A stretch of DNA of 64,000 nucleotides, taken from IMG/VR virus record IMGVR_UViG_3300032236_001613, positions 248,001 to 312,000 of that record; one strand, written 5' to 3'. The first letter of the stretch is position 1. Each line of letters starts with the position of its first letter. Below are positions 50,947 to 63,424 of this stretch, in pieces. The translations under genes and the position numbers were made by a program. Below the pieces are notes generated by a model, which saw nothing but the letters and a program-made list of their open reading frames with translations, was not told the origin of the DNA and made no database searches.

Positions 50947-51227
50947 TAAACAAGTATATAGAATTACATAATGAACTTATTGATCTTTTAGTAACTTATC
51001 ATAATGCTCATCTAAACTTTATTAAACGACCTTCTGCTTACAGTATGGATCCTGTAATTAGAACAACAGCAAAGATATCTAGAGCATTAAGAGAAATAAA
51101 ACGTTACAATAGAATATTGAGACCAGTTTTATTAGATCAAAAAAGAAAGCATGTAGAAAATAAAAGAGCCAAAAAGGAGGCAAGAAAAAATGAGCGACTC
51201 AACAGAACAAATGAAAACCGCACTTAA
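50943..51227 (+). CDS. Hypothetical basic protein
   Basis: 94 aa, Lys/Arg-rich; ATGA overlap with gp46. Confidence 0.6.
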   Translation: MINKYIELHNELIDLLVTYHNAHLNFIKRPSAYSMDPVIRTTAKISRALREIKRYNRILRPVLLDQKRKHVENKRAKKEARKNERLNRTNENRT

Positions 51228-51387
51228 CAGTTACCTAGCCGAGAATGACAAGTTTGTCGGTGGAAATTCAGCAGCAGGAACTCGTGCTCGCAAGGCATTA
51301 GCTGAACTCGGTAAGTTAGTTAAGGCACGTCGTAATGAAATTACAGCAGAAAAGAATGCTCGCAAGGCGTCTAAGTCTGCATCGTAA
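51190..51387 (+). CDS. Hc1-like (histone H1-like) small DNA-binding protein
   Basis: KF..GNSAAGTRARKAL.EL..L.K..R motif; AGGAGG RBS. Confidence 0.7.
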   Translation: MSDSTEQMKTALNSYLAENDKFVGGNSAAGTRARKALAELGKLVKARRNEITAEKNARKASKSAS

Positions 51388-51390
51388 ACA

Positions 51391-51816
51391 GTGACTTGGT
51401 TCTATCAAGAACAAATTGTTACTGAACTGCCCGAAGATTGTGTTGGATTTATATATCTTATTACTAATACAATCTCGGGCCGTATGTACGTCGGAAAAAA
51501 ATTGGCTAAGTTTAGTAAAACCAAATATAAAACAGTAAAACTTAAAAACGGCAACAAGAAAAGAAAAAAAATTAAGAGCAAAATAGATTCAGATTGGCAA
51601 ACATATTATGGCTCCAGTGATGAACTATCAAAAGATATAGAAAAATTAGGCAAAGAAAACTTTCGAAGAGAAATATTACATTACTGTACTAGTAAGGCAC
51701 AAACATCATATCTCGAAGCAAAAGAACAATTCGACCGTCGTGTGTTAGAAACCAATGAATATTACAATGGTCACATACGTGTTAGAATCCATGGCTCACA
51801 TATAATCAAAAAATAG
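51391..51816 (+). CDS. Stand-alone GIY-YIG nuclease
   Basis: GFIYLITNTISGRMYVGKK, YYGSS, FRREIL, LEAKEQF, YYN. Confidence 0.85.
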   Translation: MTWFYQEQIVTELPEDCVGFIYLITNTISGRMYVGKKLAKFSKTKYKTVKLKNGNKKRKKIKSKIDSDWQTYYGSSDELSKDIEKLGKENFRREILHYCTSKAQTSYLEAKEQFDRRVLETNEYYNGHIRVRIHGSHIIKK

Positions 51817-52256
51817 GCAAATACACAGTTAAGGCTAGCATCGGCCAACCTCGGATGCCCATGATAACCACACGAAAGTGATGGGGACGGAAATTCTCTG
51901 CGCTGTACAGAGTGTTCAACTACTATCCTTTACAGGACGAAGATCGCAAACGCCGCGGTTTAGTTGTTTAAAAGAATTTAAAGGCACAAAGATGGGGAGC
52001 GAAACCCCGAACTATTATATAAGACTAGCGGGTATATAATAGTTACCGTCATAAAGAACGCTGCTCGAGGTACCGGATGACCGCCTCTGTAATGCAGTAA
52101 CGCTAGGGTTGTGATACTCAGATAATAATCACAGAAATCTTACCCATATGGTGGGTAAGTATGGCTGATTAATCTAGATAATCTTAAATCAGTTCTATCT
52201 TTTCTAGAAAATGGCTACGAGCGTGAGCGAAGTAGCGAGCTAGCGTAGCTGGCTCT
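51817..52256 (+). ncRNA. Candidate large structured non-coding RNA (family unassigned)
   Basis: ORF-free and GC-richer than its flanks; more than 10 stems including a GAAA tetraloop, a perfect 12-bp helix, nested multibranch domains and a potential pseudoknot. Confidence 0.65.
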
Positions 52257-52261
52257 AATAA

Positions 52262-52269
52262 TATAAATA
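52262..52269 (+). promoter_or_regulatory. T4-type late promoter
   Basis: Exact TATAAATA before ATG 52294. Confidence 0.65.
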
Positions 52270-52293: not shown

Positions 52294-53007
52294 ATGAAAT
52301 TATCTGATGTGTTTTCCGAAAGTGCTCTTAATGAGTTAGGGATTATTAAATCTTTTAAAGCTGGATATCGAGCAGGTAAAAATAAAGTTCTAAATTTACC
52401 AACCGGATCACAAGTCGATAACGAACCAGCGCAAGCAACAACTAATCAAGCTGCACAACAGCAGCCTGCTCAACAGCCAAATGCTCAAAATACAACACAA
52501 CAACCTTCTCGCACAACGACACAAGCAGCAACTACTCCAGCGGAACCACCTACCGCTGCACAAAACATTGCATCTCAACAAGCACTTAATCAAAAATTAT
52601 CGGCAGGTAATCAAAACACTAACGATTATCTTAAAAGTATAGCTGCACAGATAAAGTCTGAGCCAGATACTAACAAGAAAATTGAATTAGGTAGAGAATT
52701 AATTAACTTTGTTGCAGATCGTCATAGTCAGCCTAACTGGGGGACTTTATCAGGCGTAGCTGGCAGTATAATTAAAAAGAATATACCGGATCCAAATTTT
52801 GTTAAGCCAGCATTAGAAAAAATTAAGGACGGTGGACATATCGGTACTGACGAATTAGAATCCATAAATTACATGCTTGAAACTGTAGGATTAAGCCTAT
52901 TAGACTTAGGATTAGAAGCTGTTCTAACAGAAAGCAAAGGTTCTTATATTTTAAGACGTGTAGTAGATACATCTATTTTAGATTTACGTAAGCTAGCAGG
53001 ACTATAA
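52294..53007 (+). CDS. Hypothetical protein, probable internal head protein
   Basis: Late promoter; Gln/Ala/Thr-rich linker; C-terminal LRKLAGL motif shared with the scaffold protein. Confidence 0.6.
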   Translation: MKLSDVFSESALNELGIIKSFKAGYRAGKNKVLNLPTGSQVDNEPAQATTNQAAQQQPAQQPNAQNTTQQPSRTTTQAATTPAEPPTAAQNIASQQALNQKLSAGNQNTNDYLKSIAAQIKSEPDTNKKIELGRELINFVADRHSQPNWGTLSGVAGSIIKKNIPDPNFVKPALEKIKDGGHIGTDELESINYMLETVGLSLLDLGLEAVLTESKGSYILRRVVDTSILDLRKLAGL

Positions 53008-62675: not shown

Positions 62676-62746
62676 AGTTCGCTCGAAAAGAGAGTTTATG
62701 CAGTACCCACTGCGTAGATCCTAGAACGATCTTATAAAATAAGGAG
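62676..62746 (+). promoter_or_regulatory. Structured 5' leader (three-way junction plus SD-sequestering hairpin)
   Basis: GTTC/GAAC closes CTC-GAAAA-GAG and GTTTATGCAGT-ACCC-ACTGCGTAGAT; CTTAT/ATAAG overlaps the AAGGAG RBS. Confidence 0.5.
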
Positions 62747-62752
62747 AAACAA

Positions 62753-63424
62753 ATGGGACGTCCGATTAAAAAGAGATTTTTTGCTGGCACAGCAGTTGTT
62801 GCTGACACTGCAGGTATGGGAGTTGTTGCACCAAACGGTGTTGCTATTCTTACAAGTGGTACTAATTTTACTATTGTACCGACAGTAACATTTAGCCAAC
62901 CAGATATTTTAGGTGGTACAGTTGCAACTGGACACGTTACAGTTAACGGAGCTGGTAATCTTGCTAGTTTTGTTGTTGATTCTAGCGGTTCTGGTTATAC
63001 ATTAGATCCTGATATTGTGTTAACAGGTTCAACAGGAACAGGTGCAACATTTAGTGTTACATTAGCAGGAGTTAGTAATACAGGAAAAATTACAACTTCC
63101 GCATACTTACCGAGAAAGTCGTCTGTTGCTAGAACATCAACAATTCTAAAGCAAGAATCGAGTCATCGTTATCTTGTGCAAAACAGAGACGGTGACGGCA
63201 TTTGTAAATTAACTGCATCTGGTAGTTTAACTGCTGGTCAAATGAGTATTACTGCAACTGATAGCGCAGGTGGTACATATTATGTAACAAAGTTAACATC
63301 TCGTAAAGCATTGTTAACTCCGATTAACGGAACACAGTTTCCTACTAACACTTATGCAAAATGGTTACGTTCTAGTGACGGCTCGCCAGTTGCAAATGTT
63401 AGTGTAACTATTCCTGTTGCTTAA
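62753..63424 (+). CDS. Virion structural protein (possible head decoration protein)
   Basis: MGRPIKK N-terminus; SGSGYT beta repeats like those in the giant protein; downstream of the capsid gene. Confidence 0.65.
   Translation: MGRPIKKRFFAGTAVVADTAGMGVVAPNGVAILTSGTNFTIVPTVTFSQPDILGGTVATGHVTVNGAGNLASFVVDSSGSGYTLDPDIVLTGSTGTGATFSVTLAGVSNTGKITTSAYLPRKSSVARTSTILKQESSHRYLVQNRDGDGICKLTASGSLTAGQMSITATDSAGGTYYVTKLTSRKALLTPINGTQFPTNTYAKWLRSSDGSPVANVSVTIPVA

Follow-up and report, generated by a model that had tools for sequence, protein, structure and literature searches.

The closest described counterpart of the RNA analysed here is Polynucleobacter-1, a motif of 141 nt that was defined from 16 examples with the remark that its "3' half is not always detected" (Weinberg et al. 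2010, PMC2864571). At that time it had not been found in any purified phage, and the supplement of the same study placed it downstream of a phage-like gene family (GOS11034, P-SSM2 gene 218-like) (PMC2864571). Among larger phage-borne RNAs, GOLLD and ROOL are described as forming homo-oligomers.

Here, we report a comparative analysis of a locus in a 64-kb stretch of viral DNA (the whole stretch analysed, hereafter the window), for which an initial annotation made from the letters alone had proposed a pseudoknot within a large noncoding RNA. Comparison with homologs supports this pseudoknot and refines the proposal: the 141-nt Rfam motif known since 2010 is one domain of a ~435-nt RNA, carried by T4-like phages of fresh water, that holds at least four pseudoknots, of which the proposed one is a single member. 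Like Polynucleobacter-1 as described, the RNA is associated with fresh water and with Burkholderiales and lies downstream of what may be the same phage-like gene family, and positions 51833-51969 of the window match the Rfam model end to end. Unlike it, the motif makes up only the first third of the RNA found here, and the model is without the central domain (in which the proposed pseudoknot lies), the twin-loop 3' domain and the leader pseudoknot.

Results

Genomic context

The virus record that contains the window is 328,068 bp long and estimated to be 92% complete, and it carries the RNA as a single copy. The neighbouring genes are T4-like and include a late sigma factor, SbcD-/SbcC-like (gp47/gp46-like) nucleases, a baseplate hub and a portal protein; no tRNA genes were found in the 64-kb window. 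The pseudoknot sits in a 477-nt gap between a 141-aa ORF (51391-51816, + strand) and an ORF at 52294. The 141-aa protein consists of a SegE-type GIY-YIG nuclease domain alone: PF19835 matches residues 3-129 over profile positions 1-123 of 123 (E 1e-32; 113.4 bits against a cut-off of 25), and the translation shows GFIY, MYVG, YLE and YYN, which supply the GIY and YIG motifs and the Glu and Asn of a predicted active site. Its identification with T4 endonuclease II found no sequence support. The family (phrog_447) is encoded in 497 cultured-phage records and is common in T4-like cyanophages; the setting resembles the arrangement reported in 2010, and the family may correspond to GOS11034/PSSM2_218. 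In deposited phage genomes, members of the family are often annotated as 'NAD synthetase', apparently an error passed on from record to record. A 65-aa ORF (51190-51387) immediately before the GIY-YIG gene has a match to the histone H1-like Hc1 (PF07432, E 5e-13), which is unusual for a phage. The window also holds a second Rfam motif, freshwater-2 (RF02980), at 62678-62755 directly before the ATG at 62754 (59.5 bits against a cut-off of 49.9).

The GIY-YIG gene is on the same strand as the RNA and directly before it in 75 of 83 loci. In seven of the other eight it lies 0.8-1.8 kb upstream of the RNA, with extra ORFs between them. The gene is found behind gp46 in 77 of 79 related loci, a conserved synteny on account of which we dropped the idea of a mobile cassette made up of a homing endonuclease and an RNA. 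Because all phage loci share the gp46/gp47 neighbourhood, the synteny of the GIY-YIG gene and the RNA could itself be lineage inertia.

On the other side of the RNA, between it and a + strand ORF (52294-53007), lies a TATAAATA box (52262-52269, + strand) that recurs in many homologous loci and matches the T4-type late promoter consensus. Its position places the likely promoter of the next gene downstream of the RNA. The + strand ORFs behind the RNA start in many loci with MK(I/V)x(E/D)(I/L)(I/L)xE and are otherwise variable and of low complexity; this start presumably resembles the capsid-targeting leader of T4 internal proteins.

These flanking genes bear on the possibility that the RNA is a cis-acting leader, riboswitch-like or an antiterminator, for the gene downstream. 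A same-strand ORF does begin 35-100 nt past the terminal hairpin in 29 of 75 phage loci and behind the bacterial copies described below, the RNA has the high structural complexity and conserved junctions that a leader might show, and the 2010 table marks the Polynucleobacter-1 motif as probably cis-regulatory. However, in 46 of the 75 loci the gene that follows is encoded on the opposite strand, the downstream genes fall into 22 unrelated clusters, those behind the bacterial copies are unrelated to each other, and the RNA shows no terminator or anti-terminator arrangement. Thus, neither a constant place in a 5' UTR nor a recurring same-strand gene was found. Given the opposite-strand genes, the 22 families, the late-promoter-like TATAAATA box between the RNA and the next gene, the ORFs that can separate the nuclease gene from the RNA and the noncoding character of the element, a leader for the next gene is improbable.

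Comparative evidence for the pseudoknot

In the window, positions 52010-52021 (AACTATTATATA) and 52033-52044 (TATATAATAGTT) can be read directly as a perfect 12-bp helix with an 11-nt loop (52022-52032, AGACTAGCGGG), and CTAGCG at 52025-52030 within that loop is complementary to CGCTAG at 52101-52106. Each of these coordinates agrees exactly with the initial annotation. Taken alone, such a match says little. Of random sequences matched in length and dinucleotide composition, 42% have at least one perfect 6-nt complement to the loop (mean of 0.68 matches), and the lone complement on which the annotation was built is therefore insufficient. The folding energy of the single sequence is not exceptional (z of -1.9 on the + strand and -2.3 on the - strand) and, with values near -2 on both strands, is uninformative. 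Since the match does not exceed chance and the folding energies are unremarkable, the question was settled by comparison of homologs.

Two sets of homologs were gathered independently. A pattern derived from the Rfam consensus gave at least 119 stretches in viral contigs; among the matches listed, ~84 are true members and the rest are chance hits inside genes or cut contigs. Their similarity to the window extends well past the Rfam motif, to ~52255. From these we aligned 50 homologs with MAFFT (alignment A1). The second set was collected through the neighbouring gp46-like gene and searched with R1, a covariance model built on the nested pairs of the central domain alone, without the 52025-31 to 52100-06 pairing. 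R1 found 56 further copies, and the resulting 57 hits, the window included, were aligned by the model (A2). Overall, the motif occurs in the 328-kb virus record and in ~140 viral contigs.

Both sets contain the compensatory changes that the initial annotation had named as the check on its proposal. In A1, the helix between 52025-31 and 52100-06 is 92.3% paired and all seven of its pairs change on both sides. The helix holds 37 compensatory cells, compared with 10.2 +/- 2.5 after shuffling, and none of 500 shuffles reached 37, a control that ignores relatedness; when the partners were slid by 1-3 columns, pairing was 23-50%. In A2, the helix is 99.7% paired with four of seven pairs changing on both sides, and the pair 52029-52102 is CG in 25 sequences and UA in 24. 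Part of the pairing percentage is inherited, because both strands are fairly conserved in sequence. The paired variants include CUAGCG/CGCUAG, UAGUG/CACUA, ACAGCAU/AUGCUGU and CUGAUAU/AUAUCAG as well as rewrites of the whole helix (ACAAUA/UAUUGU, CUAGCAU/AUGCUAG, AUAACGUU/AACGUUAU and CAUAAUA/UAUUAUG). On a quick tree built without the pseudoknot columns, the pair 52029-52102 changes state at least seven times and 52030-52101 at least six times, counts that come from a tree only partly supported, with 3-4 independent contrasts on supported branches. The position of the partner is also maintained: in homologs with insertions of 20-50 nt, it still lies 10-14 nt before the next hairpin.

The helix of the family is one pair longer than that proposed. 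It comprises seven pairs between CTAGCGG (52025-52031, + strand) and ACGCTAG (52100-52106, + strand, after helix P2); the six proposed pairs are present in the window, where the seventh is lacking (G-A). The stalk that presents the loop, hairpin Pb (52010-52044, + strand; 12-bp stalk and 11-nt loop), is likewise conserved, its outer nine pairs being 84-90% paired with eight of nine changing on both sides. The loop letters 52025-31 thus pair outside their own hairpin (52010-44) and beyond the P2/P3 element, which is the arrangement of a pseudoknot.

A chance complementarity, in which loop and downstream hexamer are unpaired and their match is an accident of one sequence, would agree with the 42% of random sequences that give such a match and with the reappearance of CTAGCG at 52240 and of GCTAG at 51834-38. 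Neither of these other copies covaries with the loop, however, and coincidence would have to account for two strands that change together in two independently gathered sets, up to complete rewrites, and for a partner that keeps its distance from the next hairpin despite insertions; we regard it as very improbable. The compensatory substitutions exceed the controls, and on this comparative sequence evidence we put the probability that the loop at 52025-52031 pairs with 52100-52106 as a pseudoknot inside a structured noncoding RNA at a little under 0.9.

Architecture of the RNA

The conserved RNA, ~435 nt from leader to terminal hairpin (51822-52255, + strand), starts just past the stop codon of the upstream gene and is shared by ~100 viral contigs. 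Its ends, the strand expressed and its abundance are deduced, since no RNA run carrying the locus was found among the sequencing runs searched. All nested helices covary, and at least four pseudoknots and invariant unpaired stretches are present.

The 5' domain (51833-51969) corresponds to Polynucleobacter-1 (RF01718), which matches on the + strand only and over model positions 1-141 of 141 (cmscan 87.5 bits, E 3.1e-17; gathering score 37). In alignment A3, helix P1 (51838-42 with 51854-58), an outer helix (51917-21 with 51962-66) and a hairpin (51943-47 with 51955-59) are each 100% paired with 4-5 compensatory pairs. Two pseudoknots belong to this domain. One joins GGCT (51833-51836, + strand) to GGCC (51843-51846) in the loop of P1; it is 88.8% paired in A3, where the pair 51834-51845 is GC in 46 sequences and AU in 12. 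The other connects a leader strand (51825-51829, + strand) to 51902-51906 in the loop of the 5'-domain hairpin P3. It is indicated by mutual information and by the alignment, with many compensatory pair types, and after re-registration the mean helix is 5.02 bp long, compared with 3.95 +/- 0.10 with shuffled partners. The leader strand lies outside the Rfam model, 9-13 nt past the stop codon of the upstream gene.

The central domain contains hairpin Pb, the pseudoknot described above and an element of two nested helices (52060-52098, + strand). P2 (52060-64 with 52094-98) is 95-96% paired with 3-4 compensatory pairs. The central P3 (GAGG 52067-70 with CCTC 52084-87), stacked under P2, is 100% paired in the forms GAGG/CCUC, GUGG/CCAC, UAGG/CCUA and CAGG/CCUG, and the element carries the invariant loop TACCGGA..ACCG. 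A second central pseudoknot joins GTCAT (52048-52052, + strand) to ATGAC (52077-52081) in the loop of the central P3. It is 98.8% paired in A1 and 93.1% in A2, three of its five pairs are compensatory, and its variants include GUUGU/ACAAC, GUCAU/AUGAC and GUCGU/ACGAC. With both flanks of the P2/P3 stack thus tied to loops, the two pseudoknots form an interlocked and compact core. The 3' strand of the annotated pseudoknot (from 52100) begins two bases past the end of P2 (52098), and because it abuts P2 we infer that the pseudoknot helix likely stacks coaxially on it. We think it very likely that the pseudoknot exists and has a structural role. In our model that role would be architectural, setting how the 5' and 3' domains are oriented to each other.

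The 3' domain is a series of hairpins on the + strand. The first (52110-52133) carries loop M1 (ACTCAGATAAT, 52116-52126) and the third (52165-52192) carries loop M2 (ATCTAGATAAT, 52172-52182); we refer to M1 and M2 as the twin loops. Between them stands a G+C-rich hairpin (52139-52159), supported by covarying pairs and by alignment A4. Farther downstream, a hairpin with a covarying GCTAC/GTAGC stem (52214-52236) has a conserved 13-nt loop, GAGCG-N3-GCGAA, that can be divided into GA/GAA flanks, a 2-bp GC stem and a GNRA-like tetraloop, and it is kept in all three architectures discussed below. The terminal hairpin (52237-52255) has an 8-bp stem and a GTA loop; six stem pairs covary at 100% pairing, and in many loci an opposite-strand gene ends right behind it.

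The initial annotation had argued from an AU-rich stalk and a GC-rich loop for function at the level of RNA, and the comparison supports that argument. A protein-coding or DNA-level element might have produced the conservation instead, seeing that a 53-codon ORF (51878-52039) overlaps the region and that folding is about equally good on both strands. That ORF, however, is open in one of 55 homologs, namely the window itself, and the element accordingly functions as + strand RNA. Substitutions keep base pairs in every helix, including G-U pairs, which on the opposite strand would read A-C, and together with the restriction of the Rfam match to the + strand they leave a coding or DNA-level origin hardly credible.

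The twin loops

The twin loops read ACTC-AGATAAT (52116-26) and ATCT-AGATAAT (52172-82) in the window. Their last seven letters are identical to each other, and these letters vary among homologs. This identity holds for 81 of 82 members and, on a second count, for 54 of 55. Of the gp46-anchored loci, all 65 that are complete enough to be judged show it, as do all three bacterial copies. There are 15 variants, and parsimony on the quick tree requires at least 18 concerted changes. The twin loops are thus a case of covariation by identity rather than by complementarity.

Searches for a partner within the RNA or near it were negative. No complement of the twin loops was found as 8-mers within 800 nt or as exact 7-mers up to 5 kb away, mutual information revealed no partner anywhere in the RNA, the conserved block ACUAUCC received no support as one, and neither self-pairing nor pairing between M1 and M2 was found. 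The complement is not enriched in the 328-kb phage genome, and the palindromic look of the loops in the window is not conserved among homologs. That the loops are identical and have no complement in the places searched suggests a single partner with two equal sites.

Related RNAs with other layouts

A blastn search with the 477-nt gap gave no match in 50,697 cultured-phage records, and an Rfam scan of the RNA region at E up to 10 returned only RF01718 and two chance-level hits. Within the metagenomes, contigs from several runs end or branch at ~52063 and ~52105, where the most conserved block of the RNA is bounded. Assemblies thus break where many relatives share sequence, and many different relatives must therefore live side by side in these lakes.

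In some phage loci, the 3' domain described above is preceded by another 5' part, one without an Rfam match. In nine close-relative loci (L246:8644-9115, L253, L261, L265, L271, L274, L300, L305 and L314), a gap of ~470 nt follows the same GIY-YIG gene. The 3' part of this gap is like that of the RNA, with twin loops ACATGAA or GCATGAA, the GAGC..GCGA loop and the terminal hairpin. The 5' two-thirds differ and match neither RF01718 nor the central-domain model. A model of the twin-loop region, R2, finds this second architecture weakly (E 7e-4 to 0.06) and misses both the L246 copy and those in bacteria, all of which were identified from the twin motif and by visual inspection.

The third layout is bacterial. 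Three of 151 Burkholderiales genomes, all small, combine RF01718 with another central domain and the same 3' domain, and their twin loops are AGCGAAA or GGCGAAA. No GIY-YIG gene lies near these copies, and in two genomes the ORFs that follow the RNA show no relation to each other. In one genome (G051, locus C4:71077-74217, - strand), the copy is flanked by a Zorya type I system (ZorABCD) on one side and a tyrosine integrase on the other. A scan of the bacterial genomes with the pattern GGTACCGGANNACCGCC, which is a poor one, gave 120 chance matches in G+C-rich genomes and no member.

Discussion

Our results are consistent with a model of a folded RNA particle that acts in trans. The RNA would probably be transcribed together with the upstream GIY-YIG gene, and it would offer its twin loops to a partner with two equal sites, which could be a dimeric protein, a nucleic acid with two copies of the complement or a palindromic DNA site with its two strands. 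A stand-alone RNA that acts in trans is, in our view, probable. As a best guess, the most likely version is a scaffold displaying both loops for a partner that is duplicated or dimeric. The specific mechanism, that the twin loops bind a two-site partner, is a tentative proposal that we consider less likely than not. Loops that change in step are an unusual signature, and they provide a direct experimental handle.

One candidate for the partner is the adjacent nuclease. The RNA and the domain-only GIY-YIG protein could form an RNP whose nucleic-acid recognition, lacking in the protein, comes from the RNA: the twin loops would read a 7-nt sequence twice, and the pseudoknot would shape the scaffold. 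The gene is upstream and on the same strand in essentially all phage loci, an association already noted in 2010, and the protein is a catalytic domain alone beside an RNA whose twin loops have no partner in cis. On the other hand, the bacterial copies of the RNA have no adjoining GIY-YIG gene, both relatives of the gene that we inspected in cultured phages, in Melnitz (52% identity) and P-HM1, have no such RNA behind them, and other ORFs can separate gene and RNA. All phage loci share one synteny block, and no residue of the protein tracks the letters of the loops, a test that was powerless with 3-4 supported contrasts. We therefore consider a partnership of RNA and nuclease unlikely. Its fullest form, in which the RNA is the recognition subunit of a new RNP nuclease and the twin loops aim the 141-aa domain, which carries no DNA-binding domain, at a short sequence twice, is quite doubtful. 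In such an enzyme the double-pseudoknot core would set the spacing of the loops, and the target might be, for example, both strands of a palindromic site. If it were true, the 15 loop variants would be 15 specificities.

The complexity of the RNA also raises the possibility of a ribozyme, or of a self-assembling RNA-only particle like ROOL and GOLLD, in which the pseudoknots would form an active site or a protomer, and protomers would touch one another through the twin loops. A length of ~435 nt, four or more pseudoknots, invariant unpaired stretches and, as with GOLLD and ROOL, carriage by phages would suit such a role. No Rfam model of a ribozyme, intron, GOLLD or ROOL matches at E up to 10, however, and there are no flanking exons. 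In addition, the twin loops are identical rather than complementary to each other, and their palindromic look in the window is not shared by homologs. We rate this alternative as rather unlikely, and continue to favour a trans-acting scaffold for a two-site partner.

Large natural RNAs with several covariation-supported pseudoknots are rare, and the ribozymes, OLE, GOLLD, ROOL and raiA have each opened a structural or functional line of work. With more than 100 diverse sequences now available, the RNA described here is represented well enough for covariation-guided modelling and for cryo-EM. Because it is found beside a minimal GIY-YIG nuclease in phages and beside Zorya in one bacterium, it is a candidate for a role in conflict between phage and host or between phages.

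Finally, the locus can be compared with other known systems that it resembles in part. Like GOLLD and ROOL, the RNA is a large, elaborately folded, phage-borne noncoding RNA with several pseudoknots, a comparison of kind only. It differs from them in matching neither model, in having no tRNA neighbours in 64 kb (such neighbours are frequent for GOLLD and ROOL), in its smaller size and in its link to a GIY-YIG gene. A group I intron with a GIY-YIG gene, such as T4 td with I-TevI, similarly places a GIY-YIG gene beside a pseudoknotted RNA in a T4-like phage. In contrast to that case, no intron model matches at E up to 10, the RNA is flanked by separate small genes instead of the halves of a split host gene, and the strands enclose no equivalent of P4-P6: 7 nt lie between a 5' pseudoknot strand and P2, as set against the P4-P6 domain of an intron. 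Moreover, the homing endonuclease gene of a group I intron roams, whereas the GIY-YIG gene here is syntenic behind gp46 in 77 of 79 loci. The omega RNAs of HEARO/IscB and TnpB and the bridge RNA of IS110 are also long structured RNAs beside a small nuclease gene. Their partners are RuvC/HNH or DEDD enzymes rather than GIY-YIG proteins, and their guides have variable segments that match flanking DNA; to judge from the letters, an omega-type guide seems not to apply here, where the loops have no complement within 5 kb and the bacterial copies have no nuclease gene beside them. In one respect the likeness is closer, as the IS110 bridge RNA contains two loops with a common core sequence, resembling the twin loops of the RNA described here.
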